Virus record (IMG/VR): IMGVR_UViG_3300046170_000378
Coordinates: 124,001-188,000 of that record
Length of the DNA stretch: 64,000 nucleotides
Direction: 5' to 3' (one strand)
Shown: positions 1,593 through 61,408 of the stretch, one piece after another
Layout: the number at the start of each line of letters is the position of its first letter
Position numbering within the stretch: position 1 is the stretch's first letter
Program-made: the position numbers and the translations under genes
The notes under the pieces: generated by a model
Seen by the model: the letters and a program-made list of their open reading frames with translations, nothing else
What the model was told of the DNA's origin: nothing
The model's database searches: none

Positions 1593-1595
1593 AAT

Positions 1596-2492
1596 ATGGC
1601 ACACGATAAACACACGACAAGCACAATGAATCAAGATTTAAATCTAATGATGCCAAATAGACAGGCGTGGTTAGATTTGGCCGGTGATTGGCAAGATCCA
1701 CTGGATGATCCAGTTATTGTGAATCATGAAGGATTTAATGTAGTTAGAGATGATTTAATGGGATTTGGATCTAAATGTAGATTTGGTGATATTCTAGTTC
1801 AAAAGGCACCAACGGATACTTTAGTATACGTACAGCCCAGGTTTGGTTTTGCAGGAATATCTCTCGCATATTTAGCCAAAAAATATAATAAGAAACTGGT
1901 ATTATTCATGCCATCGGGCAAAGTAATATCAGATCATCAAGCAATATGTATTGAGAGAGGAGCAATACCTAAATTTAGAAGAATTGCAGCAATGCCTAAT
2001 TTAAATAGAATTGCAAAACAATGGGCAGAAGATAATAATGCAACATTTATTCCACTAGGACTTAAACATGAACTAGTAACTGCAGCCGCAGTAAAGGTTG
2101 CATATGATGTAGCAGAAAAACATGGTTATCCAGAAGAAGTGTGGTCAGCAATATCTACTGGCGTTTTATCTAGATCTTTACAAATTGCATGGCCAGATGC
2201 TGAATTTAATGCAGTCGCGGTTTCTAGAAATATACAGACAGGTGAATTAGGTAGAGCTAAAGTTTGGTCACATCCAAAGGCGTTTGCATCAGATGTTAAT
2301 CCAGAATTTGCACCTCCGTTTCCATCTGCAATGAACTACGATGCAAAGGCTTGGGAATTTATGGTTAAGCATGGAAATCAAGGAGCTTGGTTTTGGAACG
2401 TAGGTGGACAACCTTACCCAGAATCAGAGGAAACTAAAGAAAAAACAAATTCAAAAAGAGAATGGGGAGAAGTTTTAGAAATGGACAAATAA
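1596..2492 (+). CDS. PLP-dependent enzyme, fold type II (cysteine synthase/desulfhydrase-like)
   Basis: VVRDDL..FGSKCR (PLP lysine), GFAGISLAYLAKKYNKKLVLFMP, SAISTGVLSR phosphate loop. Confidence 0.75.
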   Translation: MAHDKHTTSTMNQDLNLMMPNRQAWLDLAGDWQDPLDDPVIVNHEGFNVVRDDLMGFGSKCRFGDILVQKAPTDTLVYVQPRFGFAGISLAYLAKKYNKKLVLFMPSGKVISDHQAICIERGAIPKFRRIAAMPNLNRIAKQWAEDNNATFIPLGLKHELVTAAAVKVAYDVAEKHGYPEEVWSAISTGVLSRSLQIAWPDAEFNAVAVSRNIQTGELGRAKVWSHPKAFASDVNPEFAPPFPSAMNYDAKAWEFMVKHGNQGAWFWNVGGQPYPESEETKEKTNSKREWGEVLEMDK

Positions 2493-2496
2493 TACT

Positions 2497-2524
2497 GAAA
2501 CTATCTCACTAAAGATCATAGAAT
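2497..2524 (+). promoter_or_regulatory. Putative middle promoter variant GAAAC-N17-TAGAAT
   Basis: Same spacing as the GAAAC-N17/18-TATAA family; upstream of dNTPase/polymerase. Confidence 0.45.
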
Positions 2525-2542
2525 TAATATACACAAAAAAAT

Positions 2543-3007
2543 ATGGCAAACATAGACAACAAATGCGCAGATCTTGATATTCAAGATTATCACAAAGATA
2601 CTAAAGATACTTTTGGTTTACTCTTTGACAAGCAAAAAGAATTGCAATCTAGATTGGGCTTTGACTTTGAAGGTTGGAGCATTAAAGAGATTGCAGATTT
2701 CTGGATGGTAAACAAACATGCAATGAGCGATGAGCTTAATGAAATGTTTGATGCACTAGGTGGAATTAATGACGGTATTGGAAACGCAGGTTGGAAATAC
2801 TGGAAGAAGGACAATGTTAAGACTCCTGAAATGAAAATCGAAGATCTTAGCGAAGAAGATAAGCTAGAATTATTTTATGAGTGGATTGATGGTCTTCATT
2901 TTTATATGAACTTTGCAATTTCTATTGGTATGACAAGTAAAGATATAGTTAACTTGTACATGGCAAAGAATGCTGAGAATCACGATAGACAAGAGCGAGG
3001 ATATTAA
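2543..3007 (+). CDS. Dimeric (all-alpha, MazG-like) dUTPase/dNTP pyrophosphatase, T4 gp56-like
   Basis: SDELNEMFDALG...WKYWK...ELFYEWIDGLHF...YMAKNAENHDRQ. Confidence 0.75.
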   Translation: MANIDNKCADLDIQDYHKDTKDTFGLLFDKQKELQSRLGFDFEGWSIKEIADFWMVNKHAMSDELNEMFDALGGINDGIGNAGWKYWKKDNVKTPEMKIEDLSEEDKLELFYEWIDGLHFYMNFAISIGMTSKDIVNLYMAKNAENHDRQERGY

Positions 3008-3025
3008 TCAAACAACACACATAAT

Positions 3026-4442
3026 ATGTTACTAGACATAGAGCAAAAAGAAAACGAAGTTATTATTAGTTACTACGATAAGGAAGGTAAAGTTTCCTTT
3101 AAAAGATATTCTGTAAATAAATTTGAAAATTGGGTAGTTACTGAAGAAAAGGATCGTTGGAAAGATGTTAAGTTTAGGAACTGGGATAATAGACCTATTA
3201 AAAGATCTATCTCTAGAAGTTTTAATAAATTTAGCCTGCTCTATTTCATGGATTCATTGCCTGAAAAAGATCAAGAAGAAATCTTTGAATTTAATATGCC
3301 ACGTACATACTTTGTGGATATTGAAACTGAAATTGTAGATGGATTCCCAAAAGCAGAAGAAGCAAAAACTAGAATTCTATCGTTTTCTATTATTACACCC
3401 TGAGCGCAAAGCAATTGTTTTAGGTTTAGAAGACATGAGTTCTGATCAGATCAAGAAAATTGAAGAAGATACCAATAAACACTTCAAAGATTATGATCAA
3501 GACTGGGAATTTAGTTATTACAAGTTTGACGACGAGTATAACATGGTTTATAGTTTCTTACATAAGTTTTTACCTAAGTTCCCAATGATGACTGGTTGGA
3601 ACTTCATTAACTATGACTGGCAGTATATAGTAAACAGATGTAAGAGATTACAAATCGACCTGACTGATGTGGCTATCACTGGATCACTAGATCGAAATGA
3701 TAGTAGACCATTGCACATGGGTATTCTAGATTACATGCAATTATATGATAAATATGATAGATCAGTTGCAGTAAAAGAATCTAATTCTTTAGATTTTGTA
3801 TCGAGCTCAGTATTAGATGTTGCAAAAATCAAATACACTGGTGGATTACAAGAACTTTATGAAGATAATTTTCAAAAGTACATTTACTATAACGTAGTCG
3901 ATTCTTGTCTGGTATATTACATAGATCAACAACTTAGATCCATGGAAGTACTATTGACATTGGCAACTATCACAAGAATGCCGCTTTATAAAGCAGCATC
4001 TCCAGTGGCAGTAACTGAAGCACTTATAGCTAGAAAGCTAATAGGTCAGAATAAAAAAATTGGAATGGAATGGAATAAAGAAGATGCTAAAAAAGATGGC
4101 AAATTCGAAGGAGCATTTGTTAAACAGCCTATTGTAGGCTATTACTCTGGAGTTTCTGCGTTTGACTTTGCATCTCTGTATCCATCAATCATGCGTCAAT
4201 TTAATATATCTCCGGATGCATTTATTGAACAAGTGAATGAAATGGAAATTCCAGAAAGAAGAAAAGACAAAGATGTCATTGTCTGCGAAAACGGTGTTGT
4301 ATATAAGAAAGAAGATAGTATTCTTAAAAAGATACTAGCAGATTTATATGGTCAAAGAAAGGACTATAAAAGAACTTCTTACGAGTATTATGAAAAAGCC
4401 CATGAACTAGAAAAAAAATTAAAGAAAAAAATTAAGGTCTAA
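3026..4442 (+). CDS. Family B DNA polymerase, N-terminal subunit (gp43A-like: 3'-5' exonuclease + motif A); one apparent +1 indel at ~3400
   Basis: ExoI VDIET, ExoII GWNFINYD, ExoIII YNVVDS, motif A FDFASLYPS; removing one C from acaccctgag joins the ORFs as IITPERKAIV. Confidence 0.9.
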
Positions 4443-4593: not shown

Positions 4594-5604
4594 ATGTCAA
4601 ATCTCTTTAAAGAACGCTTAGAATACAAACCGTTCGAATATCCTGAATACTATAACGAAGGTTGGCTTAAACAGGCCCAAGCCTTTTGGTTACACACTGA
4701 AATCTCAATGCAAGGTGATGTAAAAGATTGGAATGAAAATCTTATGCCACATGAAAAAAACCTTGTAGGTAATATTCTTTTGGGTTTTGCTCAAACCGAA
4801 TGTGCAGTTTCAGACTATTGGACTAATATGGTAACGAGTTGGTTTCCTAAACATGAGATTAGACAAATGGCTATGATGTTTGGATCACAAGAAACAATAC
4901 ATGCAGTTGCATATTCATATCTTAATGAAACATTGGGCTTAGAGGATTTTGCAGCATTTTTACACGAACCTGCAATTGCCGAAAAGTTTGACCTATTAAC
5001 TTCAACTTCTGCAGATTACACACATGAAGATCTAGCAGTTAATGAAGATGCTAGAAAAGAAGTCGCTAGATCATTAGCTATTTTCTCAGCATTTGCTGAA
5101 GGTGTTTCACTCTACAGTTCTTTTGCGGTTTTATATAGTTTCCAAATGAGAAACTTACTTAAAGGAATTGGCCAACAAATGAAGTGGTCAGTAAGAGATG
5201 AGTCTTTGCACTCAAAGATGGGATGCCAGTTATTCAGACACATGTGTACAGAGTATCCAGAATTAAAGGATCAAGTAGAATCAGAAGTTTTAGAAGCTGC
5301 TAGATTAATGGTTGAAATGGAACACAAGTTTATTGATAAAATGTTTGAGCAAGGTGATCTTGCAAATATGGAAGCAGAAAATCTAAAACATTTTATTGTT
5401 AAAAGAGCTAATGAAAAGATTGCAGAGCTTGGATACACCGATGGTCCTTTTATGGAATTAGATGATGAAAAAGCAAGTAACTTAGATTGGTTTTATCACC
5501 TAACAGGTGGACATACGCACACCGACTTTTTTGCTATCAGACCTACTGACTACGCAAAAGCAGGAGAAGACGAGAATTGGGACGAGGATGACTTGTTCGA
5601 CTAA
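4594..5604 (+). CDS. nrdB: Ribonucleotide reductase class Ia beta subunit
   Basis: QETIHAVAY, FAEGVSL, VRDESLH di-iron motifs; C-terminal acidic tail. Confidence 0.95.
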   Translation: MSNLFKERLEYKPFEYPEYYNEGWLKQAQAFWLHTEISMQGDVKDWNENLMPHEKNLVGNILLGFAQTECAVSDYWTNMVTSWFPKHEIRQMAMMFGSQETIHAVAYSYLNETLGLEDFAAFLHEPAIAEKFDLLTSTSADYTHEDLAVNEDARKEVARSLAIFSAFAEGVSLYSSFAVLYSFQMRNLLKGIGQQMKWSVRDESLHSKMGCQLFRHMCTEYPELKDQVESEVLEAARLMVEMEHKFIDKMFEQGDLANMEAENLKHFIVKRANEKIAELGYTDGPFMELDDEKASNLDWFYHLTGGHTHTDFFAIRPTDYAKAGEDENWDEDDLFD

Positions 5605-10706: not shown

Positions 10707-11816
10707 ATGGCAAAGAAAGATTTTAGTTTTGACGATATAAACGCTGAGTTAAAACAATTGAATCCTATGGGATCAATTATGGCAGACTCAACTTTTAGTG
10801 AAGTTACAGAGTGGATTGACACTGGTAACTATCACTTGAATGCATGTGTTAGTGGTTCACTTTTCGGTGGATGGCCAAACAGTAGAACATGTTCAATCGC
10901 AGGACCCTCAGGAACTGGTAAAACATTCTTAGTATTGAACTCAGTAAAAAGAGCAATCGATATGGGATATAATGTGATCTATTATGATAGTGAAGCTGCG
11001 GTAGATAAAGATCAAATGGAAAAGTTTGGTATTGATGTTACTAAAGTAAATTATCAACCAATTAACACTGTTCAAGAATTTAGAACATCGGTTACTACAT
11101 TAACTAGTAAGATGCAAGAGATCAAAAGAGTTGGTGGTAAAACACCAAAGGTTATGATGATTCTAGATTCTGCAGGTAACTTAGCAACACAAAAAGAAAT
11201 TGAAGATGCAAAATCAGGATCTGAAAAAGCAGATATGACAAGATCTAAGGTGCTAAAATCTATTTTTAGAATCATTATGACACCTTTAGCAGATCTTAAG
11301 ATACCGTTTATTTTTACTAACCATACTTATCAGACTCAAGATTTTATCTCAAGACAAGTAGCTGGTGGTGGAACTGGACCAGAATATGCAGCATCTATTG
11401 TTCTATTCTTAGGAAAGGCGCAACTTAAAGAATCTAGTGGTGAAAAAGCAGGTATTATTGTAACTGCTAAGCCAAATAAGAATCGTTTTGCAAAACCACA
11501 TAATATTAAATTTCACCTACACTTTACAGAAGGTATGAACAGATATGTTGGGTTAGAACAATATATTGATTGGGAAGAAATTGGTATTACAAAGGGTGTT
11601 ATCGAAAAGGGTGAGAAGATCCCTAAGAAAACTGCAAGAAATTGGATCTGTAAGCACTTAGACGAAACTGTACCTAATAAAGATTTCTTCTCAGAGAAAG
11701 TATTTACACAAGAAGTATTAGAAAAGATTGAAGCTAGAATCAAACATGTCTTTAATTACAATACTGAAGAAAGAGAAATAGACTTAGACGAAATATTAGA
11801 AGAGGATGCAAATTAA
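10707..11816 (+). CDS. uvsX: RecA-like recombinase (UvsX)
   Basis: IDTGNYHLN, GPSGTGKT, YYDSEAA, ILDSAGNL, GGGTG. Confidence 0.92.
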   Translation: MAKKDFSFDDINAELKQLNPMGSIMADSTFSEVTEWIDTGNYHLNACVSGSLFGGWPNSRTCSIAGPSGTGKTFLVLNSVKRAIDMGYNVIYYDSEAAVDKDQMEKFGIDVTKVNYQPINTVQEFRTSVTTLTSKMQEIKRVGGKTPKVMMILDSAGNLATQKEIEDAKSGSEKADMTRSKVLKSIFRIIMTPLADLKIPFIFTNHTYQTQDFISRQVAGGGTGPEYAASIVLFLGKAQLKESSGEKAGIIVTAKPNKNRFAKPHNIKFHLHFTEGMNRYVGLEQYIDWEEIGITKGVIEKGEKIPKKTARNWICKHLDETVPNKDFFSEKVFTQEVLEKIEARIKHVFNYNTEEREIDLDEILEEDAN

Positions 11817-18361: not shown

Positions 18362-19543
18362 ATGGCAAAATTAAATAAAAACATTATTTCACCTGTTTTA
18401 GAACACGGAAATGGCTATGTTTTCAATGTTGCTGGCCAAAATTTTAAAATAGTTGGAAGCCACATTGACATGTTCAACGAGGCTAATGCAGATTTTAATT
18501 CATTAATAGCAGGTCAAAGAACATTTAACATTAACGAAAATAGTGTTGACTTTATCTACGACTACAATAATAAATCAATAGTGTCTTCGATAGATGAAAG
18601 TGCATTCGATAATTTCAACAAAACAATCGAAGCTCAGGAAAAATTAGCTTTCTTAAAAGAAAGTACTAAAACTGTAAAGCTAGGAAAATCTACAGAAGCT
18701 TTAAATGAAGCTAAGAATGAAATCGCTCTATTAGAAGCGTTTCTTTCTACAATGAATAGATCTCCTAGAGCAATTAGATTCACATACAACGTAAGTGAAA
18801 ATACAGTTTTCGCAAATAACATTGAGATCTTAAATCACAGTGATTCTGTAGTAGAATCTATATTTGCTTCAGGATATATCAAATATGAAGATAAATCATT
18901 ATTTAGATTATTTGAATTTACTGGTAAAAACCACAGCGTTTATAAAAGATTAGATTTTATAGTAGAATCTAGATCTAACAATATTTCTATAGCAACAATG
19001 AAAGCTGGACATAACGTTTATGTTTGGAGATTAAACGAAGAAACTACTATCGGTAAATTTTCTAAATTATTACCAGACGCAGCGATTGATTATGTTGCAG
19101 AACACACAGGTGCAGATGTGACATTTTTAGTTGAAGATATTTTAGAATCATTTTCTGAGAGAAGAGATGCTAAAAGAACTAAAATTGCTCAACTACATGA
19201 AATGATCGCATTTCTAAAAGATCAAAAAGGACGTATAGCAGAAGCTGATAGAAATCTACCAGATATTAAAGCAGCGGATAATTTGATCAATACAGAAATA
19301 GCTAGATTGAGTGAAGAATTAACAGACGCTCAAAATGAAGAGTTACTTGGACTATCTGACGGATATTTAGATGCAACTATTTCTAGAGAAGCTGAAGGTT
19401 TAAAAATTGGAGATGCCATCAAAGTAGATGCAGTAGAATACGCGGCAGCTGGAAAAGATGACACACTAACTGTTTTTGCAAATGACGAACCGCTTAGAAT
19501 TGAAAAATTTAGAGTTGAGTTAGAAGCAGGCTCAGGAGTCTAA
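18362..19543 (+). CDS. Hypothetical protein, probably virion-associated
   Basis: 393-aa ORF with late motif upstream. Confidence 0.65.
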   Translation: MAKLNKNIISPVLEHGNGYVFNVAGQNFKIVGSHIDMFNEANADFNSLIAGQRTFNINENSVDFIYDYNNKSIVSSIDESAFDNFNKTIEAQEKLAFLKESTKTVKLGKSTEALNEAKNEIALLEAFLSTMNRSPRAIRFTYNVSENTVFANNIEILNHSDSVVESIFASGYIKYEDKSLFRLFEFTGKNHSVYKRLDFIVESRSNNISIATMKAGHNVYVWRLNEETTIGKFSKLLPDAAIDYVAEHTGADVTFLVEDILESFSERRDAKRTKIAQLHEMIAFLKDQKGRIAEADRNLPDIKAADNLINTEIARLSEELTDAQNEELLGLSDGYLDATISREAEGLKIGDAIKVDAVEYAAAGKDDTLTVFANDEPLRIEKFRVELEAGSGV

Positions 19544-19567
19544 ACTAATCTAATATAATTAATACTT

Positions 19568-19598
19568 AAGCCCGTTTGGAAACAAATGGGCTTTTTTT
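19568..19598 (+). terminator. Rho-independent terminator overlapping a middle promoter
   Basis: AAGCCCGTTTG-GAAA-CAAATGGGCTTTTTTT. Confidence 0.75.
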
Positions 19599-19605
19599 CG
19601 TATAA
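19579..19605 (+). promoter_or_regulatory. Putative middle promoter GAAAC-N17-TATAA
   Basis: Upstream of gp55-like sigma. Confidence 0.6.
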
Positions 19606-19626
19606 CCTTAAACTAAATAGGACAAA

Positions 19627-20004
19627 GTGGCTAGAAAGAAAAATTACCTCAACAATAAAGATCTTTACAACGCAATCGTAGAATCTAAAGATCAAGATAA
19701 ATTGACACCTACTGCAGAGAAAATGTTAATGTTACTCGCAGAAAGAGCAATAAATAAATTAACGTATGTAAATAATGATGACAGAGATGACTGTTTACAA
19801 TTTGCAATGTTAGATTTACTAAAATACTGGCGTAATTTCAACCCAAAGTATACCAATGCATTTGCGTATTTTACAGAGATAGCAAAGAGAGGATATGCTA
19901 AGGGGTGGAATAAAATACACCCTCAAAAATATAAAAATACGCTTTCAATGGATAAGATTTCATCTAAAGATTCTAGCGGCGAAAGTGGAATGTTCAATAT
20001 ATAA
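19627..20004 (+). CDS. Late-transcription sigma factor (gp55-like)
   Basis: NYLNNKDL...RDDCLQFAMLDLLKYWRNFNPKYTNAFAYFTEI. Confidence 0.85.
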   Translation: MARKKNYLNNKDLYNAIVESKDQDKLTPTAEKMLMLLAERAINKLTYVNNDDRDDCLQFAMLDLLKYWRNFNPKYTNAFAYFTEIAKRGYAKGWNKIHPQKYKNTLSMDKISSKDSSGESGMFNI

Positions 20005-20477
20005 TGTCAATAAAAAATGTTAGACCAACTAATAATTCAGGATTTGTACAGGGATATTTTACCCCAACTAATCCAGAAAAATATATTGGCCCAACACCGA
20101 TAATATACAGATCCTCTTGGGAAAGAAAGTTTATGATAATGTGTGACACTAAAGATAATGTTGTAAAATGGGCAAGTGAGCCAGTTGAAATCAAGTATAT
20201 CTGGTCTTTTGATAAAAGAGAGCATAAATATTATCCTGACTTTTATATGAAAACTAAAACTGAAGATGGATTCGAAGAGTTTTTAGTTGAAATAAAACCA
20301 GAAGCTCAAATTAAAAAACCACAACCACCAAAAAAGAGAAGCAAGGGAGCTATTAAATCCTATAAGTTTTTAGCTGAGCAGTATGTCAAGAATATGGATA
20401 AATATAAGTATGCCAGAGCCTGGTCAGAAAACAGGGGTTGGAGATTTATCGTACTTACAGAAAAGTCACTTAAATAA
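20004..20477 (+). CDS. Head completion nuclease (gp4-like, TnsA-type fold)
   Basis: YRSSWERKF, WASEP, YYPDF, VEIKP, FIVLTE. Confidence 0.85.
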   Translation: MSIKNVRPTNNSGFVQGYFTPTNPEKYIGPTPIIYRSSWERKFMIMCDTKDNVVKWASEPVEIKYIWSFDKREHKYYPDFYMKTKTEDGFEEFLVEIKPEAQIKKPQPPKKRSKGAIKSYKFLAEQYVKNMDKYKYARAWSENRGWRFIVLTEKSLK

Positions 20478-21074
20478 TGGGTCAAATCAAAAAAGACATA
20501 AAGCAACTATTTAAATCAGCTGGTAATAAAGGCAAAGCCATCAATGAGGCTAAAAAATGGTTTGATAAGGGTAAAACAAAAAGTATTGCAGATACTCGTA
20601 GACCATTTGAACCAGGAAAGATATATGTTTTTGAATATAAAAAACCCAAACACATTGACAGAATAGCATGGTTTCGATGCCTAATCCAGTTGTACTAGCA
20701 TTAGATCCAACTGATTTTGGAAATGACTGTGGCATAAATTTAAACTTATTACCACCCTAATATAAAAGAAGACTTACTAGATTTTGTTTATGAACAAATG
20801 AAAGGTCAAATAGAAAACCAAAAGAAAGGTGGTTCTGCAGATAACGCAAAAAAACAAAGTGAGCTTAAGTTCACTTATGAAGGTGCAAAGAGATTTCTAA
20901 AAGAGTATGGCTTTCGATTTTGCAATCAGACAATACATTCCAAATCTTAAATCAAATCAAAAGGTCGTGTCTTATGAAAGTTGGGCCAAAATAGCGATTT
21001 TAGACTTTGCAGACATTAATGGTAGCGACTTGAACAAGATCCAGGAAGCATTTAGAAACCACTTAAAGAAATGA
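20477..21074 (+). CDS. DNA end protector protein (gp2-like); several apparent indels
   Basis: PGKIYVFEY...WFDANPVVL...GINLNLLPP reconstructed across frames. Confidence 0.7.
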
Positions 21075-21082
21075 GATATATA
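21075..21082 (+). promoter_or_regulatory. Putative late promoter GATATATA
   Basis: Upstream of portal. Confidence 0.6.
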
Positions 21083-21105
21083 AAACATAACATAAATTAA
21101 AAAGT

Positions 21106-22704
21106 ATGGCAGGATTTACAGATAAAAGAAACGGGCCATTGAGCGTCAATACAAAACCGTTTAGCCTCTCAAGTGCACTTAAAACCTTGAGTAGTTTCGG
21201 TATGCGCTATGATGATCTAGTACTTAGACAGTCACAAGCCATCGGTCCAATGGAAGCCCAAATAGGGTATGGGGAAATGAACCCATTTGGATATGACAAT
21301 GACGACATCTACGGTGCATTCGCAGCCATGTCCATGACCGACATTAATCTTAAGAAGAATATTCCATTCTTTGATAAAGATTATCTAACAAAAAGAGATG
21401 AATTAAGAAGATTCTCAACCAATGATGAAATTGAAGATATTTTAGATATTCTATGTGATGAGACTATCGTATATGATGAAAAGAATTTCTTCGCTCAACC
21501 TGAAGTATTAGGACTTGACATATCTGATAAGGTAAACAAAGATCTTAACAGATACTTTAGACAAATCTATCACTATTTTGGTTTTACAGAAGATCAATCG
21601 GCATGGTACTACTATAGAAAATTCTTGATAGATGGTTATTTGGCATTTGAAATAATTTATTCCCCTGACCAAAAAGAAATTATAGGTTTTAAAGAACTTG
21701 ATCCTGTTACATTAATCCCAGGTTATAATACTGACGATGGTAAAAAGGTTTGGGTACAATATAAAGATGATCCAGTAAAAGAAAGAAAATTATACGATTC
21801 ACAAATCATATACGTATCTTATTCGTCTATTACAACAGCATCAAGAGTCTCTTACTTAGAAAGATTAGTAAGAGCATTTAACCTACTTAGAATTATGGAA
21901 CACACTAGAGTGATCTGGTCTGTTACCAATGCTTCGTTTAGAATGAAGTTTATTATCCCAGTTGGTGGTAAATCTAAAACAAGAGCAAAGCAATCACTTT
22001 CTCAGTTAATGAATTCTTATAAAGAACAAGTAGATTTCGATTGGGACTCAGCTTCTCTTTCAACTGATGGTAAACCAATGCTCCAGTTTAGTAAAGAATA
22101 TTGGTTACCTTCTAAGGACGGTGATTCACCAGAAATTGAAACTCTTGGTGGTGAAGGTCCAGAACTAAACGACACTGAAGCACTTAAATATTTCTCAGAT
22201 AAATTAAAACACGTATCTAAGATACCATTTAATAGATTCTTATATGAAGATGGTGGTGGGGAATTTAACCTTGCAGCCGATGGTATGATTAGAGACGAGA
22301 TTAAGTTTGGTAAATTTATCAAGCGTTTAAGATCTACGTTCCAAGAAATATTAGTTAAGCCATTGTATTTACAAATCTGTTTAAAATATCCAGAGTTTGT
22401 AGATGATCCACAATTTAAAACTCAAGTAGCTTTAAGATTCAATGAAGAAAACATGTTTGCTGAAATGAAGCACATGGAAATCATGGAAAAAAGACTTGAA
22501 TTTATTGGATCTATGAGAGATAGCTTAATGACTACTAATCAAGAAACAATGGAAGAAGAATATTACTTCGATCAGGAATACCTAGTTAAAAAATATCTAA
22601 AATTGTCTGATGATGAAATTAGATCAAATGAAGCTGCAAAAGCAGCAAAAGCTAGAGAAGACGCTGAGGCTCCTGAAGAAGAAGATGATGGGATGGGCAT
22701 CTAA
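21106..22704 (+). CDS. Portal protein (gp20)
   Basis: EIEDILDILCDE, FLIDGYL, SYLERLVRAFNLLRIME, EYWLPSKDG..PEIETLGG. Confidence 0.92.
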   Translation: MAGFTDKRNGPLSVNTKPFSLSSALKTLSSFGMRYDDLVLRQSQAIGPMEAQIGYGEMNPFGYDNDDIYGAFAAMSMTDINLKKNIPFFDKDYLTKRDELRRFSTNDEIEDILDILCDETIVYDEKNFFAQPEVLGLDISDKVNKDLNRYFRQIYHYFGFTEDQSAWYYYRKFLIDGYLAFEIIYSPDQKEIIGFKELDPVTLIPGYNTDDGKKVWVQYKDDPVKERKLYDSQIIYVSYSSITTASRVSYLERLVRAFNLLRIMEHTRVIWSVTNASFRMKFIIPVGGKSKTRAKQSLSQLMNSYKEQVDFDWDSASLSTDGKPMLQFSKEYWLPSKDGDSPEIETLGGEGPELNDTEALKYFSDKLKHVSKIPFNRFLYEDGGGEFNLAADGMIRDEIKFGKFIKRLRSTFQEILVKPLYLQICLKYPEFVDDPQFKTQVALRFNEENMFAEMKHMEIMEKRLEFIGSMRDSLMTTNQETMEEEYYFDQEYLVKKYLKLSDDEIRSNEAAKAAKAREDAEAPEEEDDGMGI

Positions 22705-49556: not shown

Positions 49557-49981
49557 TGCAAGAATTATTTAAAGAAAGAGTTAATTATAACAAATTAGGT
49601 GGCAAAGAGCAAGAGGTTTATAATTTTGCTAAAACAGCAGCAGTACTAGTAGAATATGGATTTGCGTGTTCTCAGATCACAGCAGATAAGCATGGTGCAG
49701 ACATGATTGCATATCATATAGATACAGCTACTCCATATTCTATTCAGCTAAAAGGCTCCAGGGCTACACTGGATCGTAAGTATTCTGGTAAAAACATTTG
49801 GATTGCATATACAGATCGTAAAACAAATGAGCTTTGTATTTATAATCATGATCAAGCTGCAGAGATATTTGAAAAAACCAAATCAGGTCAATGTGACACA
49901 TGGAAAAACAAAGGATGGTATAGTGGAATGAGTATGCATAAACATTTTGAAGAAATTATTACTCGTTTAAAAATAAATTGA
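49556..49981 (+). CDS. Putative PD-(D/E)XK nuclease-fold protein
   Basis: GADMIAY...SIQLKG. Confidence 0.5.
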   Translation: MQELFKERVNYNKLGGKEQEVYNFAKTAAVLVEYGFACSQITADKHGADMIAYHIDTATPYSIQLKGSRATLDRKYSGKNIWIAYTDRKTNELCIYNHDQAAEIFEKTKSGQCDTWKNKGWYSGMSMHKHFEEIITRLKIN

Positions 49982-49992
49982 AAATAATTAGT

Positions 49993-50030
49993 CCCAGATT
50001 TTTTTATGTCAATTATTTGTGGTATATTAG
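49993..50030 (+). promoter_or_regulatory. Putative early promoter CCCAGATTTTTTTATGTC-N9-TGGTATATTAG
   Basis: Repeated motif; downstream leader nearly identical to 57895-57921. Confidence 0.6.
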
Positions 50031-50054
50031 TATTGTATTTAAAAGCTAAAAGAT

Positions 50055-50285
50055 ATGACAATTAAACAATTTTACTTAGAGAACTATCCAAGCGATGATT
50101 TGGGTACTGAGATCGATGAAAGCGCAACTTTTGCAGGTTTGCTAAATAATATAATTACAGCCAACGACGTGTATTCATATATTGGTGTAGGTGATAGTAT
50201 TATTAGAGAAAGATTATTTTCTAAATTAGCAGAACAATTAAACACAAGTTACGATTACGTTTATAATTTATGGTTAAAAAAATAA
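50055..50285 (+). CDS. Hypothetical protein
   Basis: ORF track. Confidence 0.6.
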   Translation: MTIKQFYLENYPSDDLGTEIDESATFAGLLNNIITANDVYSYIGVGDSIIRERLFSKLAEQLNTSYDYVYNLWLKK

Positions 50286-51818: not shown

Positions 51819-52673
51819 ATGCCAGAATTAGCCGAACTTAAATTAACATCAGATTACGTAAATAATTGCTCAGAAGGAGTAACATATGCTCGCGTAGAAA
51901 AGAATCCCCAACACAAAGGTAAGGAGCTAGATATTCCATTTAAATATTTCAGGCTTAAATCAGAAAGTAAAGGTAAAGAAATTGTACTAACTATTAAAGA
52001 TGAAGATAGCAAAGATTTTATTCCTATTCGTATTACTATGGGAATGTCAGGTCATTTTCAACTAACAAATACTGGCCAAGAGCCAAAGCACGCACACCTT
52101 AAGTTCCATCGAAAAGACGGCACTACACTATCGTTTGTAGATGTACGTAGATTTGGTAAATGGACACAAGGTGTTGCATGGAACGAGGACAGAGGACCAG
52201 ATCCAACGTCAGATTTCGATGCCTTCTTTTTGAATATTATGACTAATCTTACTAAAAGAACATTTCGTAAGCCACTTTATGAAGTTCTTATGGACCAAAA
52301 ATGGTTTAATGGGATTGGTAATTATCTAAGAGCTGAAATTATATTTAGAGCAGAGAATGTTGATCCATTTCTCCCAGCATCTCAGCAAATTGCTAAGTAC
52401 CCAAAGATCTTGGAACTATGTAGAGATATTCCGATGTTGGCGTATGCCAAAGGAGGCGGAAGTATTCGAGACTGGGACAATCCATTTGGATCTGATGCCA
52501 TCCAAGAAAAATTTATGCTCTGTTATGGAAACAAAACGATGGATACTCGTATAGATCCTAAGGGACGTAGATTTTGGTATGATCCTAAATGGAACGCACC
52601 GATGCACAGAGACGATTTAAAAGATTGGGATTATTATAGCGGCTTACCAAGTCCTTCAGCATATAAATCATAA
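51819..52673 (+). CDS. Fpg/Nei-family DNA glycosylase/AP lyase
   Basis: N-terminal PELAE, GKE, GMSG, DVRRFG, H2TH LMDQKWFNGIGNYLRAEI; no Cys4 zinc finger. Confidence 0.9.
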   Translation: MPELAELKLTSDYVNNCSEGVTYARVEKNPQHKGKELDIPFKYFRLKSESKGKEIVLTIKDEDSKDFIPIRITMGMSGHFQLTNTGQEPKHAHLKFHRKDGTTLSFVDVRRFGKWTQGVAWNEDRGPDPTSDFDAFFLNIMTNLTKRTFRKPLYEVLMDQKWFNGIGNYLRAEIIFRAENVDPFLPASQQIAKYPKILELCRDIPMLAYAKGGGSIRDWDNPFGSDAIQEKFMLCYGNKTMDTRIDPKGRRFWYDPKWNAPMHRDDLKDWDYYSGLPSPSAYKS

Positions 52674-52678
52674 ATAAA

Positions 52679-52930
52679 TTGATAATGAGAAACACAGTTA
52701 AATTACCACAGCCACAAAAGGATATTATTGTAAAAGCCTTACAAGTTTATCAAACAGCATTAAGAACGTTAGAAGATAAAACTGATGATCAAGAATTTAC
52801 TGACTTTGATATTACTGCTTTAACTGGAATGTTTAAGGACATTGATGTTGATATAAGAATTGAATTAGATGAAGAGGTACACAACTCATTTGTACACCGT
52901 CATGGTGTAGATTTTCCAATGTATGTTTAA
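52679..52930 (+). CDS. Hypothetical protein
   Basis: ORF track. Confidence 0.6.
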   Translation: MIMRNTVKLPQPQKDIIVKALQVYQTALRTLEDKTDDQEFTDFDITALTGMFKDIDVDIRIELDEEVHNSFVHRHGVDFPMYV

Positions 52931-52941
52931 CACCAAAGACA

Positions 52942-53091
52942 ATGGGTAATTACTTAAAGCAAGGATTTGTAAGAGAGTTGGAATGGAAACTCAACAGAGA
53001 AGAAATCTCTTACTCTAAAATGGTAGAGTTGATGGAAGAAGAATGCATAAAGAACTATAATGCAGAAACCTTTAAAACCAAAGAGAGATGA
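52942..53091 (+). CDS. Mini-ORF cassette 1 (49 aa, ends ETFKTKER)
   Basis: Manually translated, repeat-bounded. Confidence 0.6.
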   Translation: MGNYLKQGFVRELEWKLNREEISYSKMVELMEEECIKNYNAETFKTKER

Positions 53092-53246
53092 GACCATTAG
53101 ACAATGTTCAAATGATTGAAGTCAAAGAAGGGGTAGTAACCATCACTTATAAAGATGGTACAACACTTACCACTAAAGAGGATATTACACTTGGACTTGG
53201 GTATAAGAATGAGAATGATATACCATTAAATGACCATTGTCTTTAA
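53088..53246 (+). CDS. Mini-ORF cassette 2 (52 aa)
   Basis: Manually translated MRPLDNVQMIEVKEG...DHCL. Confidence 0.55.
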   Translation: MRPLDNVQMIEVKEGVVTITYKDGTTLTTKEDITLGLGYKNENDIPLNDHCL

Positions 53247-53258
53247 CACCAAAGAGAA

Positions 53259-53543
53259 ATGAGTGAAGTAAATCCAAATTACAATCCACAAGCAGATTTT
53301 GACAACTTTGGTGAAGAGATGGAACACATCGTTAAGACAACACCTAAAGAGGTGCTAAAAAAGGAGTGGGATAAAGTATTAGCAGAATATGGTACTGATA
53401 CACACGACAAGATTCTATCTATGACTGATGACTTTGTTCAGTCTAATCGTAGTGAAGGACAAACCTATGCTCATTATCACTATGATATGATGGCAGACTT
53501 TGCTCTACATATATTAGAAACCTTTAACACCAAAGAGAGATGA
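53259..53543 (+). CDS. Mini-ORF cassette 3 (94 aa, ends ETFNTKER)
   Basis: ORF track, repeat-bounded. Confidence 0.65.
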   Translation: MSEVNPNYNPQADFDNFGEEMEHIVKTTPKEVLKKEWDKVLAEYGTDTHDKILSMTDDFVQSNRSEGQTYAHYHYDMMADFALHILETFNTKER

Positions 53544-53623
53544 AAGAAGAAAGAATTTATACAATAATTAATATTCTTACAGTGATTGGATTTTTTACTC
53601 TAATGATACTAGGATCAAAATGA
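53540..53623 (+). CDS. Mini-ORF cassette 4 (27-aa membrane peptide)
   Basis: MKEERIYTIINILTVIGFFTLMILGSK; ATGA coupled on both sides. Confidence 0.45.
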   Translation: MKEERIYTIINILTVIGFFTLMILGSK

Positions 53624-53859
53624 CAGAAGAACAAATTGATAGAATTATAGAAATGGCTTGGGAGGATAGAACTCCATTTGAAGCGATAGAATTCCAATTT
53701 GGTCTTAAAGAGAATGATGTTAGGAAGCTAATGAGGAAACACATGAAAGAATCCTCGTTTAAAATGTGGAGAGAAAGAGTTAAAGGCAGAAAAACAAAAC
53801 ATGCCAAAAATAGCGAAGGTACCAGATTTAAAAGCAAGAATCAAAAAGCAAATAGATGA
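53620..53859 (+). CDS. TIGR03643/DUF2805-like protein
   Basis: IDRIIEMAWEDRTPFEAI..QFGL.E..V..LMR......SF..WR.RV.GR.TKH. Confidence 0.8.
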   Translation: MTEEQIDRIIEMAWEDRTPFEAIEFQFGLKENDVRKLMRKHMKESSFKMWRERVKGRKTKHAKNSEGTRFKSKNQKANR

Positions 53860-54479
53860 AAAAATTAGAAAGAATGCAGAACTTGATTGTAGTTGGTCAT
53901 CCAGATCAAAAATCATTCTGTTACGATGGGATCTTTAAAACAATTCAAGAGACGTTATTGTCGCAAGATGGATATTTAAATGAGATCGAAGTAATTGATC
54001 TTTACAGAGATGATTTCTCTCAGCCGAGAACAGATCTTATTAAGAAATATCAAGAACTAGTGACATGGGCAGACAGAATCTATTTTGTATCTCCTGTTTG
54101 GTGGTTTAGACTTACACCAAGAACAGAAATCTTTTTTGATGAGGTGATGACACCTGGTTTTGCATATAAATTTATACCTCTTTTTGGTAACTATGCATAT
54201 CCTAAGCCATTCTTAAGTGATAAAAAGGTAAGAACGTACATTACTCACGGTGCTCCTGCGCTTCCGGTAAAAACACTCTATTTGAACTCAGTTAAACTAA
54301 GATTAGTAATGGGAGTATTTACATTTGTGTTCGGATGGAACATTTCTAGATGGCTAAAAACTAAACAATTTTGGGCAGTACCATTTGTAAGTGCAGAAAA
54401 AAGAGCTAAATATTTAGAAACAGTTAAGAAAGACATCATAAAAGATATTAAGAAACATCAAATAAAACAAGTAAAATGA
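53856..54479 (+). CDS. NAD(P)H-dependent flavodoxin-fold oxidoreductase (Flavodoxin_2/MdaB-like)
   Basis: GHPDQKSF, VIDLY, WADRIYFVSPVWWF, TPGFAY, ITHGAP. Confidence 0.85.
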   Translation: MKKLERMQNLIVVGHPDQKSFCYDGIFKTIQETLLSQDGYLNEIEVIDLYRDDFSQPRTDLIKKYQELVTWADRIYFVSPVWWFRLTPRTEIFFDEVMTPGFAYKFIPLFGNYAYPKPFLSDKKVRTYITHGAPALPVKTLYLNSVKLRLVMGVFTFVFGWNISRWLKTKQFWAVPFVSAEKRAKYLETVKKDIIKDIKKHQIKQVK

Positions 54480-54930: not shown

Positions 54931-55689
54931 ATGAAGTTCGACAAGATCTACGTATTAGCAATAAATCATACACAAGAGAAAATTGATTCTATTGTAAAAA
55001 AATTATCTGCATTAGAAACAGATGGTGTAACTAACTATGAGATTTTGGTCGGACACAATGGTTGGCAAGAAGAGCTACCTGAAGGTGCAAAAATATATGA
55101 GAATTGGGGTCAACCTGAAAGTTGGAATGATTTTTGGAAAAAGGATGTTCAACCCGGAGAAGTTGGCTGTACATTAAGTCACATCTCCGCTTGGAATAAA
55201 ATAGTAGAAGACGGAGTTTCAAGAGCATTAATTCTAGAAGAGGACTTTGTACCCAAATTACCACTTTTAGAATTGCCAGAACCCGATGAGAATTGGCCAT
55301 ATAAATGGGACTATCTAAATCTAGGCCGATATATTTTTAATAAGGAAAATGACATCATGATCAACGATGCATATTGTATCCCATCTTTACACTATAACAT
55401 GCACGCATATGTGCTGACCAACATAGGAGCTCAAAAATTAGTAGATTATAATTTACAAAAAAATATATTCATTAATGACGAGTTTATAACGGCGACATAT
55501 ATGAATCACAGGAGATCAGATATAGAAGAATTATATCCAATTAAAAATATTAATGCATTAGCAACAAACAAAAATTGGATAGGTCAAAACTCTAACGCAG
55601 AAACTACAATGGTGAGTGGACACACTAAAACATTTGAAAATCCAAATAGAGAAAGCCTGTTAAAGGCAAACGAAAAAGAAACAAAATAA
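54931..55689 (+). CDS. Glycosyltransferase family 25
   Basis: IYVLAIN, GEVGCTLSH, ALILEEDF, HAYVLT..GAQKL. Confidence 0.8.
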   Translation: MKFDKIYVLAINHTQEKIDSIVKKLSALETDGVTNYEILVGHNGWQEELPEGAKIYENWGQPESWNDFWKKDVQPGEVGCTLSHISAWNKIVEDGVSRALILEEDFVPKLPLLELPEPDENWPYKWDYLNLGRYIFNKENDIMINDAYCIPSLHYNMHAYVLTNIGAQKLVDYNLQKNIFINDEFITATYMNHRRSDIEELYPIKNINALATNKNWIGQNSNAETTMVSGHTKTFENPNRESLLKANEKETK

Positions 55690-56771: not shown

Positions 56772-57308
56772 ATGAAACAAGCTAGTAAAAGTCAGAAAAG
56801 AATAGACTTCTTAGACTTAGTCACAGAAGCTATTACTCACGAAGACATCTTCGGAACAATTGACTACAAGAACAAAAGCGAAGACAAAATCATACAATTC
56901 ATTTATCCACACCTTGTGAGTTCCTTAACAGAATATGTTATGGAAACACAGGGCAAGGATAAGGATTCTGCCAAAGACTTCGTTAAGAAAAACCTTAAAT
57001 GGGAAGGTAATGTTAATACAACAGTAAACCACATTCTATTTATGGGTACTCAAAATAGACCAGATATGGTCTTAGAGATTAACGGTTTAAAGATTGGTAT
57101 TGAATTTAAAAGAGGTCAAAAAGGATCAGAATTAAGAAGTGGTATTGGACAATCTATGGTCTATGCAACACATTATGATTTTGTACTCTACTTATTTGTT
57201 GATACTAGTGATGATAGTCGTATTAAGAATGCCCAAACGGGTGTAAATGAAACCGAATTCATAGATAATCTGTGGAATCAATATAACATAAAATTTATAG
57301 TAGCTTAA
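56772..57308 (+). CDS. Putative PD-(D/E)XK (restriction-endonuclease-like) nuclease
   Basis: NRPDMVL...IGIEFKRG...GIGQSMVY. Confidence 0.6.
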   Translation: MKQASKSQKRIDFLDLVTEAITHEDIFGTIDYKNKSEDKIIQFIYPHLVSSLTEYVMETQGKDKDSAKDFVKKNLKWEGNVNTTVNHILFMGTQNRPDMVLEINGLKIGIEFKRGQKGSELRSGIGQSMVYATHYDFVLYLFVDTSDDSRIKNAQTGVNETEFIDNLWNQYNIKFIVA

Positions 57309-57826: not shown

Positions 57827-57862
57827 TTGTTCGTAACTTTTAGTAAAATAACCGTCATTTAA

Positions 57863-57894
57863 TTTTTTTATGTCGGTTATTTGTGGTATATTAG
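57863..57894 (+). promoter_or_regulatory. Putative early promoter TTTTTTTATGTC-N9-TGGTATATTAG
   Basis: Repeated motif. Confidence 0.6.
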
Positions 57895-57918
57895 TACTGT
57901 ATTTAAAAGCTAAAAGAT

Positions 57919-58143
57919 ATGATTAGATCAAAACAACCAAAATCAGAAATAATTATCGATTTAACAGGACCGCAAGGAAATGCATTTTATCTACTTGGAG
58001 TTGCAAAGGATTTTTGTAAGCAATTAGATATGACAAAGAAAAATACACAATCAATTCTTGATGAAATGACCAGTGGTGATTACGAAAACTTAATTCAAGT
58101 TTTTGATCGTGAATTCGGATCAGTGGTAATTTTAGAAAGATAA
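57919..58143 (+). CDS. Hypothetical phage protein
   Basis: IDLTGPQGNAFYLLG; ORF track. Confidence 0.65.
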   Translation: MIRSKQPKSEIIIDLTGPQGNAFYLLGVAKDFCKQLDMTKKNTQSILDEMTSGDYENLIQVFDREFGSVVILER

Positions 58144-58940: not shown

Positions 58941-59029
58941 GCCGGAATGGTGGAATTGGTAGACACGAGGGACTTAAAATCCCTTGGGCAGTAATGCCCG
59001 TGACGGTTCGAGCCCGTCTTCCGGTACCA
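58941..59029 (+). tRNA. tRNA-Leu(UAA), CCA encoded
   Basis: Cloverleaf; AGGGA-CTTAAAA-TCCCT; long variable arm. Confidence 0.92.
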
Positions 59030-59090
59030 AGCAGGGAGTTATACAATACATGTTGGAACTATATAACTTTAAAATAGAACCCTGCGATAT

Positions 59091-59164
59091 GGACCAGTAG
59101 CTCAGCTGGATAGAGCATCTGCCTTCTAAGCAGACGGTCACAGGTTCGAATCCTGTCTGGTTCA
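59091..59164 (+). tRNA. tRNA-Arg(UCU)
   Basis: TCTGC-CTTCTAA-GCAGA; GGTTCGAATCC. Confidence 0.92.
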
Positions 59165-59172
59165 CTAAATAT

Positions 59173-59288
59173 GGGGAGTTAGTCAAATAGGTACGACGCT
59201 CCAGCTATAAGGCCGAAAACATCATACTAGTTACGAGGTGTGATTAGGCTTGTTGGCAGAAGTAGGGGTTCGAATCCCCTACTCCCCC
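59173..59288 (+). ncRNA. tRNA-like RNA with canonical acceptor, D and T arms but a ~66-nt extended central hairpin
   Basis: GGGGAGT/ACTCCCC, GTC/GAC D-stem with GG loop, AGGGG-TTCGAAT-CCCCT. Confidence 0.6.
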
Positions 59289-59389
59289 GCTCTTAGATAG
59301 GTTTAACAACCGAACAACGAGGCGTCAAATCTCACGCCTACAAGTCGAAAGACGGAGTCTAAGTGGAGTAATTTAAATATATAAACCTC

Positions 59390-59477
59390 GGAGAGGTGGC
59401 AGAGTGGTCGAATGCACTGGTCTTGAAAACCAGCGTACAGCAATGTACCGGGGGTTCGAATCCCTCCCTCTCCGCCA
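59390..59477 (+). tRNA. tRNA-Ser(UGA), CCA encoded
   Basis: CTGGT-CTTGAAA-ACCAG; long variable arm. Confidence 0.92.
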
Positions 59478-59479
59478 TT

Positions 59480-59556
59480 GGTCTGGTAGTTCAGTTGGTT
59501 AGAATACTTGCCTGTCACGCAAGGGGTCGCGAGTTCGAGTCTCGTCCAGACCGCCA
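59480..59556 (+). tRNA. tRNA-Asp(GUC), CCA encoded
   Basis: CTTGC-CTGTCAC-GCAAG. Confidence 0.92.
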
Positions 59557-59574
59557 AAAAGAAAGAGAGAGAGT

Positions 59575-60000
59575 ATGAGGTTGTTGGTGGCACTTCTTTT
59601 TAGTACAATGATGTGGGCACAAGATTGTTCACCATATCATAAGGTTGATAAGTGGGAAGTAAATGATGATGTAGATTTTACTGCAGCTTGGGTTAGTTGT
59701 TTCCACGCATCTGGCTTAGCGTTTTCAATGGATTATAACAACATCTCTTTAGGAACTCATCTGATGGGCGAAGGCCATATGAATTCTGCATACGTGTTCT
59801 TGAGCTATCAATATCAACCACTCGATAGAATTAAATTATCTGCTGGACCTCTGTATAAATTAAATAACAATAGTGGCTTAATGGTTGCACAATATGGTGG
59901 AGATATTAAGTTATATAAATCTATCTGGCTCACGAGTAGAATTTTGCAAATTAGAACAGATTTAAATTATCTTAACGTAGGACTTAAAATTGTGCTATAA
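59575..60000 (+). CDS. Secreted/possible outer-membrane beta-barrel protein
   Basis: Short signal MRLLVALLFSTMMWA; amphipathic strands; C-terminal LNVGLKIVL. Confidence 0.5.
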   Translation: MRLLVALLFSTMMWAQDCSPYHKVDKWEVNDDVDFTAAWVSCFHASGLAFSMDYNNISLGTHLMGEGHMNSAYVFLSYQYQPLDRIKLSAGPLYKLNNNSGLMVAQYGGDIKLYKSIWLTSRILQIRTDLNYLNVGLKIVL

Positions 60001-60003
60001 TTG

Positions 60004-60011
60004 GATATATA
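60004..60011 (+). promoter_or_regulatory. Putative late promoter GATATATA
   Basis: Upstream of 60032 ORF. Confidence 0.5.
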
Positions 60012-60031
60012 AAATAAATATATGTCCTTAA

Positions 60032-60490
60032 ATGTCATTCACAGAATTCAAAAATAAATTCGGTAACGTTATTTTTACAGTTACTGCTATTGGTGCATTG
60101 GTTACATTAATTGGTTACATTAGCCCAATTGTTGACTATGCGTCTGACCTTAATAAATTAGTTAATGAGTACGAGCAAATTCATAAATCTATGCAGAGAA
60201 TAGAAACTCACATAGATCAATATGAAAGTGACAGAACTAATAAGAAGAAAACCTTCTCTATCGGACTTAGATCTGATACTGAAAATGGACAAATGATCTA
60301 TGTAGATGAGAACAATGGAATCTATAGAGCGTTTCTAGACCCTAAAACTAAAGAATATTTTTATTATGATTCCGATGGACATCCGGTCTATTGTTATTCA
60401 CAAAGAAAGGTTAATGGCGAAAAAGATCATATAGAAATTAAGCCTCTAGTTCTACCTGAAATTATTATCCTTACAGACTCTATCCAATAA
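60032..60490 (+). CDS. Membrane-anchored coiled-coil protein, late (possible lysis accessory)
   Basis: N-terminal TM helix followed by coiled coil. Confidence 0.5.
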   Translation: MSFTEFKNKFGNVIFTVTAIGALVTLIGYISPIVDYASDLNKLVNEYEQIHKSMQRIETHIDQYESDRTNKKKTFSIGLRSDTENGQMIYVDENNGIYRAFLDPKTKEYFYYDSDGHPVYCYSQRKVNGEKDHIEIKPLVLPEIIILTDSIQ

Positions 60491-60673
60491 ATCAAATGAA
60501 ACAGTATTATACTGTATTGTATAAGTATTGGCTGTCAGTCAAGCTTTAGAGAGGTAGTGAAGCTGTAGTTAAGAAGTAGAGTGTATTAATTGTCGAAAAA
60601 GGGTTTATAGTAGACAGGCGTTACTCATTGCACTTAACCAGAAACCCCGAAAGACCCGAAGCCTCTCTAATTT

Positions 60674-60745
60674 GCTCCGTTCGTCTAACGGTTAGGACAT
60701 TAGGTTTTCATCCTAAAAATAGGAGTTCGATTCTCCTACGGAGTA
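60674..60745 (+). tRNA. tRNA-Glu(UUC)
   Basis: TTAGG-TTTTCAT-CCTAA. Confidence 0.9.
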
Positions 60746-60777
60746 CAATTATATAGCAAGTTTATATAAGTAAACAA

Positions 60778-60850
60778 TGTCCCTTGGTGTAATTGGCAAC
60801 ACGTCTGGTTTTGGTCCAGAAGAGTATAGGTTCGACCCCTGTAGGGACAA
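60778..60850 (+). tRNA. tRNA-Gln(UUG)
   Basis: TCTGG-TTTTGGT-CCAGA. Confidence 0.9.
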
Positions 60851-60858
60851 CAATTTTT

Positions 60859-60933
60859 CGGGGTGTAGCGTAGCCCGGTTATCGCGCCACGTTTGGGACG
60901 TGGAGGCCGCAGGTTCGAATCCTGCCACCCCGA
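60859..60933 (+). tRNA. tRNA-Pro(UGG)
   Basis: CCACG-TTTGGGA-CGTGG. Confidence 0.92.
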
Positions 60934-60953
60934 CATTTTAACACCATTTCACT

Positions 60954-60980
60954 GAAACCTTTCAAATCAGCTTAATATAA
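60954..60980 (+). promoter_or_regulatory. Putative middle promoter GAAAC-N17-TATAA
   Basis: Upstream of the Ile/Lys/Leu tRNA sub-cluster. Confidence 0.6.
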
Positions 60981-61087
60981 CTATCAAATCTAACAAACCT
61001 AGATTTTAAAAGTTATTTGACTTGCTAAACAAATAGATCATAGATCGAGTCTTGCACCTCTACATAGATTATAGGTGTTTTCAACAT

Positions 61088-61164
61088 GGGGATGTAGCTC
61101 AGTTGGTTAGAGCAGGACTCTTATATAGTCAAGGTCGTGGGTTCGAGCCCCGCCATCCCTACCA
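61088..61164 (+). tRNA. tRNA-Ile(UAU), CCA encoded
   Basis: GACT-CTTATAT-AGTC anticodon arm, anticodon TAT. Confidence 0.8.
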
Positions 61165-61185
61165 AAGGCAACTATGATTTATTAA

Positions 61186-61258
61186 GATCTCTTAGCTCAG
61201 TTGGTAGAGCATCACACTTTTAATGTGAGGGTCCAGGGTTCGAGCCCCTGAGGGATCA
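61186..61258 (+). tRNA. tRNA-Lys(UUU)
   Basis: TCACA-CTTTTAA-TGTGA. Confidence 0.92.
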
Positions 61259-61261
61259 CTT

Positions 61262-61343
61262 GCGGATGTGGTGAAATTGGTAGACACGCTAGTTTTAGGC
61301 ACTAGTGCTTTATAGCTTGAAGGTTCGAGTCCTTTCATCCGCA
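61262..61343 (+). tRNA. tRNA-Leu(UAG)
   Basis: CTAGT-TTTAGGC-ACTAG; variable arm. Confidence 0.9.
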
Positions 61344-61408
61344 CGTGTCATGCAAGCGCAAAAGACGGGGTCCCAAACAAAAGACAAGTTTGGGGCCCCG
61401 GTAAGAAT

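Follow-up and report, generated by a model that had tools for sequence, protein, structure and literature searches.

A 26-nt gene junction shared by uncultured marine phages brackets mini-genes that occur in different orders

A sequence of about 26 nt that ends one tiny gene and starts the next is shared by at least 119 contigs of uncultured marine phages. The mini-genes bracketed by it occur in different orders and with different neighbours, so that the sequence apparently marks where these phages swap small genes, although recombination itself is inferred. The element was found in a window of 64,000 nt (bases 124001-188000) of the IMG/VR virus record IMGVR_UViG_3300046170_000378, which has 212 kb, is estimated to be 76% complete and thus derives from a jumbo phage. 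An initial annotation had described an array of mini-ORF cassettes delimited by a repeat that supplies the start codon. This observation was confirmed in every detail. Its interpretation as a cassette-exchange system of small effector genes, either integron-like or driven by homology, was only partly supported: the homology-driven form holds, while the integron-like form fails.

The junction element and the mini-genes of the array

Exact copies of TTTAAMACCAAAGA are located on the + strand at 52926, 53071, 53242 and 53523, and no other exact copy exists in the window. With one mismatch allowed, the 212-kb record contains no further copy on that strand and one on the other strand. A dinucleotide shuffle of the window gives an expectation of 3.7 matches with up to two mismatches scattered along it, whereas the four exact copies lie within 600 bp. 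The full element is AAACC-TTTAACACCAAAGAGAR-ATG-A. It contains a TAA stop in one frame, a TGA stop in another and the start codon of the next gene.

The four copies bound ORFs of 49, 52, 94 and 27 aa, all on the + strand. The left-hand neighbour ORF0 (52685-52930, 81 aa counted from the ATG at 52685) has its TAA stop (52928-52930) inside copy 1 (52926-52944, TTTAACACCAAAGACA-ATG). This copy is one base shorter (GACA-ATG), lacks the AAACC flank and provides the start of ORF1 (52942-53091, 49 aa). Copy 2 (53066-53091, AAACC TTTAAAACCAAAGAGAG ATG A) is read through by ORF1, which ends with ETFKTKER, and the TGA stop overlaps the ATG of ORF2 (53088-53246, 52 aa, ending with NDHCL). Within copy 3 (53242-53262, TTTAACACCAAAGAGAA ATG A), the internal TAA (53244-53246) is the stop of ORF2 in the frame of the next ATG. 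Copy 4 (53518-53543, AAACC TTTAACACCAAAGAGAG ATG A) is read through by ORF3 (53259-53543, 94 aa), which ends with ETFNTKER, and has an ATGA overlap onto ORF4 (53540-53623, 27 aa), a hydrophobic mini-protein. Copies 2 and 4 share GAAACC in front. The TGA of ORF4 overlaps the ATG of a DUF2805 gene (53620-53859, 79 aa), but no full junction is located there, and the repeat is likewise absent from the start of ORF0.

Searches of Pfam, PHROGs and the ESM Atlas gave no match for ORF0 to ORF4. The designation of the cassettes as effectors has therefore no support. ORF1 and ORF2 are real genes under purifying selection, with dN/dS values of about 0.06-0.3 (ORF1) and 0.1-0.2 (ORF2) at dS values of 0.1-1.4, while the junctions stay unchanged. 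The array is flanked by auxiliary genes at 51819-52673, 53856-54479 and 54931-55689, namely an Fpg/Nei-like DNA glycosylase, a flavodoxin-like-fold protein and a family-25 glycosyltransferase. The DUF2805 gene reached a summed contig depth of about 420 in a seawater metagenome compared to about 16 for neighbouring phage genes. Many other organisms or phages in that sample hence carry close copies, which suggests a widely shared, host-like gene.

A second repeat of about 55-59 nt, unrelated to the junction and containing ATTTTTTTATGTCAnTTATTTnTGGTATATTAGTAnTGTAnTTAAAA, was observed in the window at 49981-50058 and 57845-57922 (95% identity between these two full copies), with a partial copy at 57093-57112. 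It is conserved in relatives (L128 at 3047-3116, 4043-4124 and 4910-5003; L139 at 688-753; L numbers denote the retrieved loci), ends about 10 nt before an ATG and sits before different genes in different relatives. It looks like a phage promoter or regulatory cassette.

Distribution and conservation of the element

A scan of IMG/VR for a 17-mer of the junction returned at least 119 contigs. Of 156 instances, 135 (87%) were directly followed by ATG and 129 by ATGA, whereas chance would give about 2%; all are co-oriented with the genes. A logo of 140 distinct instances showed a conserved block with sharp edges at -5 and +21, beyond which the information content falls to background. In a set of 191 junctions with up to two mismatches, the upstream ORF ended at the TGA overlapping the ATG in 73, at the internal TAA in 36 and just before the element in 12, and in 43 no long upstream ORF was present. 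The AAACC flank is conserved in all these classes, so the element is conserved as nucleic acid and not as a peptide. The initial annotation had also stated that many proteins of uncultured phages end in FNTKE(K/R), and this holds: 73 of the 191 junctions have an upstream ORF with the C-terminus TFNTKE[KR]. The downstream ORFs are tiny, with a median of about 60 aa and 91% of them not longer than 100 aa. The 161 distinct downstream proteins fall into 97 families, 72 of which are singletons, and 17% have a hydrophobic segment.

The element is carried by phages of about 60 kb and about 118 kb (both 85% complete), which contain clusters of it, and by a 297-kb relative (99% complete) with all six copies in a single 1-kb array. 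The L118 contig, a fragment of a distant jumbo relative (about 66% nucleotide identity in shared genes), has 21 copies in two arrays at 260-3046 and 18792-22465. One of these lies upstream of its Nei-like gene, whereas the array of the window lies downstream of that gene; array size and position are therefore hypervariable. Nucleotide and protein searches against 50,697 GenBank phage records found nothing for the window region, the junction, the L118 array or a large protein family recurring in the arrays (MKTPMQE...), and only distant hits for the exonuclease mentioned below; no cultured phage carrying the element or its array genes was found.

The element is not a generic initiation context of the host or of this phage. 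Gene starts across the 212-kb record are A-rich and lack a Shine-Dalgarno signal, as described for Bacteroidota (PMC6847099), and G occurs with a frequency of about 0.1 at -3, -5 and -7, where the element has G. Only 13 of 185,579 species genomes contain the 20-mer plus ATG. The multi-copy hits are short or phage-like contigs binned mostly with Flavobacteriaceae, Flavobacteriales and Saprospiraceae. The hosts are thus probably Flavobacteriia or other Bacteroidota, but this assignment is not proven, as seven of the 13 hits are in bins of other phyla. The same phage-like segment with junction copies and an ORF1 homologue occurs in an alphaproteobacterial (L136) and a Marinimicrobia (L137) single-cell genome, and other hits (L125, L130, L132 and L134) lie in bins of Pseudomonadales, Rickettsiaceae, Methanobacteriota and Ruminiclostridium. 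These are probably mis-binned or co-sorted phage DNA, but they leave the host range uncertain.

No significant RNA structure, sigma70-type promoter or terminator was detected at the junctions; the promoter scan covered only the sigma70-type consensus, from which Bacteroidota promoters differ. Folding of the four junctions gave z-scores of -0.3 to -0.6 for three of them and -2.6 for one, where the structure comes from an upstream hairpin outside the element. Pairing with 16S rRNA (a Shine-Dalgarno, epsilon or TURBS-like tether) was not significant, as the best duplex with a Winogradskyella 16S fragment (positions 488-1520) was no better than with shuffled motifs (p = 0.2; for the 3' tail p = 0.41). 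In two other contigs, L133 (3834-3929, - strand) and L013 (2529-2624), the 20-mer core begins at the very next base after a tRNA gene (tRNA-Met and tRNA-Arg), with the 3'-terminal ACC of the tRNA in place of the AAACC flank, which might point to an RNA-processing role. The window has 10 tRNA genes at 58941-61344, but none is followed by the element.

Cassette orders, homology breakpoints and recombination genes

As had been proposed in the initial annotation, it was examined whether the same cassettes occur in different orders and genomes bounded by the repeat, and this was the case. Homologues were retrieved by protein similarity, independently of the motif. While the order in the window is ORF0-1-2-3-4-DUF2805, it is ORF0-1-3-2-[new 84-aa ORF]-4-DUF2805 in L139, a close relative with core genes of 81-92% identity, ORF3-1-[51-aa ORF] in L150 and ORF1-2-DUF2805 in L128. 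In the latter, the DUF2805 gene sits directly behind a full junction copy, and ORF3 and ORF4 are absent. ORF4 and DUF2805 are contiguous in L139 (92%), as are ORF0 and ORF1 (91.5% nucleotide identity).

The block 53241-53545 containing ORF3 is 100% identical (305/305) to L139 (2702-3006), exactly from junction to junction, and lies before ORF2 there. The ORF2 block (53067-53262) is 97% identical in L139, 96% in L129 and 87% in L008 and is bounded by the junctions. Neighbouring cassettes thus have separate histories. ORF1 has homologues with 84-87% nucleotide identity in L021, L133, L136 and L137, with homology ending at the junctions, and its downstream neighbours are ORF2, ORF3, a 36-aa, a 30-aa and a 51-aa ORF. 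ORF2 has eight different downstream neighbours in nine contexts. Homologues of ORF3 are held by nineteen loci, with at least seven different upstream and nine different downstream neighbours. The shortened junction form (GAGA-ATGGG) stays with ORF1 homologues in L133, L150 and a further contig (G011).

Across all retrieved loci, alignments of at least 75% identity ended at the junction in 158 of 167 encounters (95%), compared to 551 of 1139 (48%) at gene starts without the element. These counts are not independent of each other and the loci were found through the motif itself. Linkage of motif variants was also tested. Base 5 of the 20-mer showed no association with the upstream cassette, while base 16, the A/G at -1, was mainly genome-specific rather than segregating with the downstream cassette, and is uniform within a genome (p < 0.0005). 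Junctions are decayed in some lineages: an ORF2 homologue with 75% amino-acid identity in L143 and L144 (around 2983-3180) has the degenerate junctions ACAAAGAAGAGATAATG upstream and TTTAAAATTAAAACAAAAAGATATG downstream, and decay was also seen upstream of ORF3 in L151-L154. The exact motif is hence not required for the genes to persist.

With regard to enzymes, a profile search with PF00589 gave no match in the 212-kb record, which is 76% complete, so that no tyrosine integrase was found, and no integrase family is among the common neighbours in the retrieved loci. The phage encodes a RecA/UvsX-like recombinase (10707-11816, + strand; PF00154, 50.8 bits, at 134770-135537 of the record, i.e. 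10770-11537 of the window), which is the candidate general recombination enzyme but is not linked to the array. In the smaller phages, the arrays sit in the replication and recombination module with a RecE-like PD-(D/E)XK exonuclease in 37 loci, primase/helicase and RusA, which are the most frequent neighbours. The genes found nearby are general recombination genes and not site-specific ones, which fits homology-driven shuffling. Small HNH endonuclease genes occur in 22 of the retrieved loci.

Interpretation and relation to known systems

The simplest reading, to which a probability of approx. 0.68 is assigned, is a translational stop/start linker used by general homologous recombination. As every copy is the same, recombination between copies could move one tiny gene at a time and leave it correctly terminated and started. 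Within one genome this would delete, duplicate or reorder cassettes, and between co-infecting genomes it would exchange them, with the UvsX/RecA-like protein as the enzyme in this jumbo phage and RecE-like exonuclease and RusA in the smaller phages. The analysis itself establishes the element, its fixed fusion to start codons, its conservation regardless of frame, its spread and the reshuffling of cassettes with homology breakpoints at the element. That recombination occurs within the element by homology is, in contrast, inferred from the exact position of the breakpoints and from the shorter variant that stays with ORF1, without a directly observed event, and its role as translation-initiation or re-initiation region is likewise inferred. 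The within-genome homogeneity of the -1 base fits this reading. Still, 26 bases is short for RecA-type recombination, and the reading does not explain why all 26 positions are held. One possibility is that cassettes with canonical junctions spread more often, so that the element is maintained by its own mobility.

It is less likely that the 26-mer is an expression signal only, i.e. a translation-initiation or coupling element or the binding or processing site of a host or phage factor, and merely marks boundaries while shuffling arises from illegitimate recombination followed by selection for intact genes. The fusion to ATG, the unstructured, A-rich sequence with A at -6 and -13, the ATGA overlaps typical of translational coupling, the uniform -1 base, which could reflect a lineage-specific factor, and the two junctions behind tRNA genes agree with this view. 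However, complete or near-complete jumbo phages confine the element to one array covering about 1% of their genes, which makes a dedicated factor unlikely, breakpoints coincide with it far more often than with other gene starts, and a 100%-identical block ends exactly at two copies. Moreover, homologues persist with decayed junctions, G at -3 is not the favoured Bacteroidota context and no significant 16S pairing was found.

A site-specific system with a dedicated recombinase or homing nuclease appears very unlikely. Although the long, exactly conserved asymmetric site, the single arrays per genome and the one-gene cassettes resemble integron arrays and HNH genes occur, no tyrosine integrase was found in this genome, the element has no inverted repeat or hairpin, no recombinase family is consistently adjacent and the element occurs in phages with unrelated gene sets. 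Diverged paralogues from tandem duplication are hardly probable either: many upstream ORFs share a C-terminal YYNETFNTKEK tail and the MKTPMQE family recurs, but the downstream proteins fall into 97 families, the element is equally conserved when read in another frame or not at all, and the same cassette is found beside many different neighbours in different phages. Mis-joining at the 26-mer is the least likely explanation. All data are metagenome assemblies and Logan contigs fragment around the array, but both orders were reproduced independently. ORF1 is followed by ORF2 in the window, L145, L128 and contigs from two DNA runs (X1 and X12), and by ORF3 in L139 and a contig from an independent metatranscriptome run (X15), which joins a diverged ORF1 allele to an identical ORF3 by skipping exactly 171 nt. 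In addition, the exactly shared stretch is shorter than usual assembly k-mers, and the cassettes differ in their identity level (100%, 97% and 91%), which a chimera within one sample would not produce. A more far-reaching reading, which is not excluded but is doubtful, is that the 26-mer is recognised by an unidentified trans-acting nuclease, recombinase or ribosome-directed re-initiation factor. Together they would form a gene-cassette commons, a phage counterpart of the integron, in which unrelated marine Bacteroidota phages draw tiny, ready-to-express genes from one shared pool.

The closest known system is the PeSL (promoter-early stem-loop) cassette of T4-type phages (Arbiol et al. 2010, PMC2839356; Comeau et al. 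2014, PMC4122927). Both are short conserved sequences repeated between small ORFs, non-essential in the PeSL case, in hyperplastic regions of large lytic phages, insertions, deletions and replacements between close relatives are bounded by the repeats, and exchange is attributed to homologous recombination in phages with UvsX-type recombination. PeSLs, however, combine a sigma70-like promoter with a terminator stem-loop, act on transcription and form mini-circles by recombination between nearby repeats. Neither a promoter nor a terminator was detected here; the element is fused to the start codon, often lies inside the upstream coding sequence, carries stops in two frames and is shared by phages of very different genome size rather than by one phage family. 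The start-associated sequences of Cluster K mycobacteriophages (Pope et al. 2011, PMC3203893) are also one-orientation repeats at translation starts of a subset of genes, with a suspected role in translation. They have 13 bp, are scattered over the genomes of one phage cluster, about half carry upstream inverted repeats (ESAS), and they are linked to particular gene families, whereas the present element is confined to one or two arrays per genome, has no inverted repeat, crosses phage lineages and coincides with homology breakpoints. Integron cassettes are likewise arrays of co-oriented, mostly promoter-less single small genes with variable content and order, but neither an IntI-type integrase nor an attC-like imperfect inverted repeat was found, and the site overlaps coding sequence and supplies the stop and start codons. 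The array is no CRISPR array, in which short regular repeats are separated by non-coding spacers of similar length (about 30-40 nt), usually with cas genes, as the spacings here are 145, 171 and 281 nt and the intervals are protein-coding and under purifying selection. A full-text literature search for the motif returned only irrelevant papers, and a concept search for such an element in Bacteroidota phages found nothing.

The element also fits the short conserved boundary or linker sequences of the modular theory of phage evolution (lambdoid phages), which serve as sites for homologous recombination and create mosaics (PMC3029335). How phage mosaics form is an old question, and the opposing view of random illegitimate joining followed by selection has been favoured because linkers are rarely found at mosaic boundaries (PMC3029335). 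Here, one sequence marks most junctions of the mini-gene arrays in more than 100 environmental phage contigs with genome sizes from about 60 to 297 kb, the unit exchanged is a single gene of about 60 aa instead of a functional module, and close relatives differ by clean cassette reordering. This gives a natural and easily tracked system for measuring linker-mediated exchange. It also gives a simple sequence tag for the pool of mobile small phage genes in marine Bacteroidota viromes, 17% of whose proteins have a membrane segment and none of which, among those tested, matched a known family. The element is furthermore a candidate portable translation start for hosts that do not use Shine-Dalgarno pairing.
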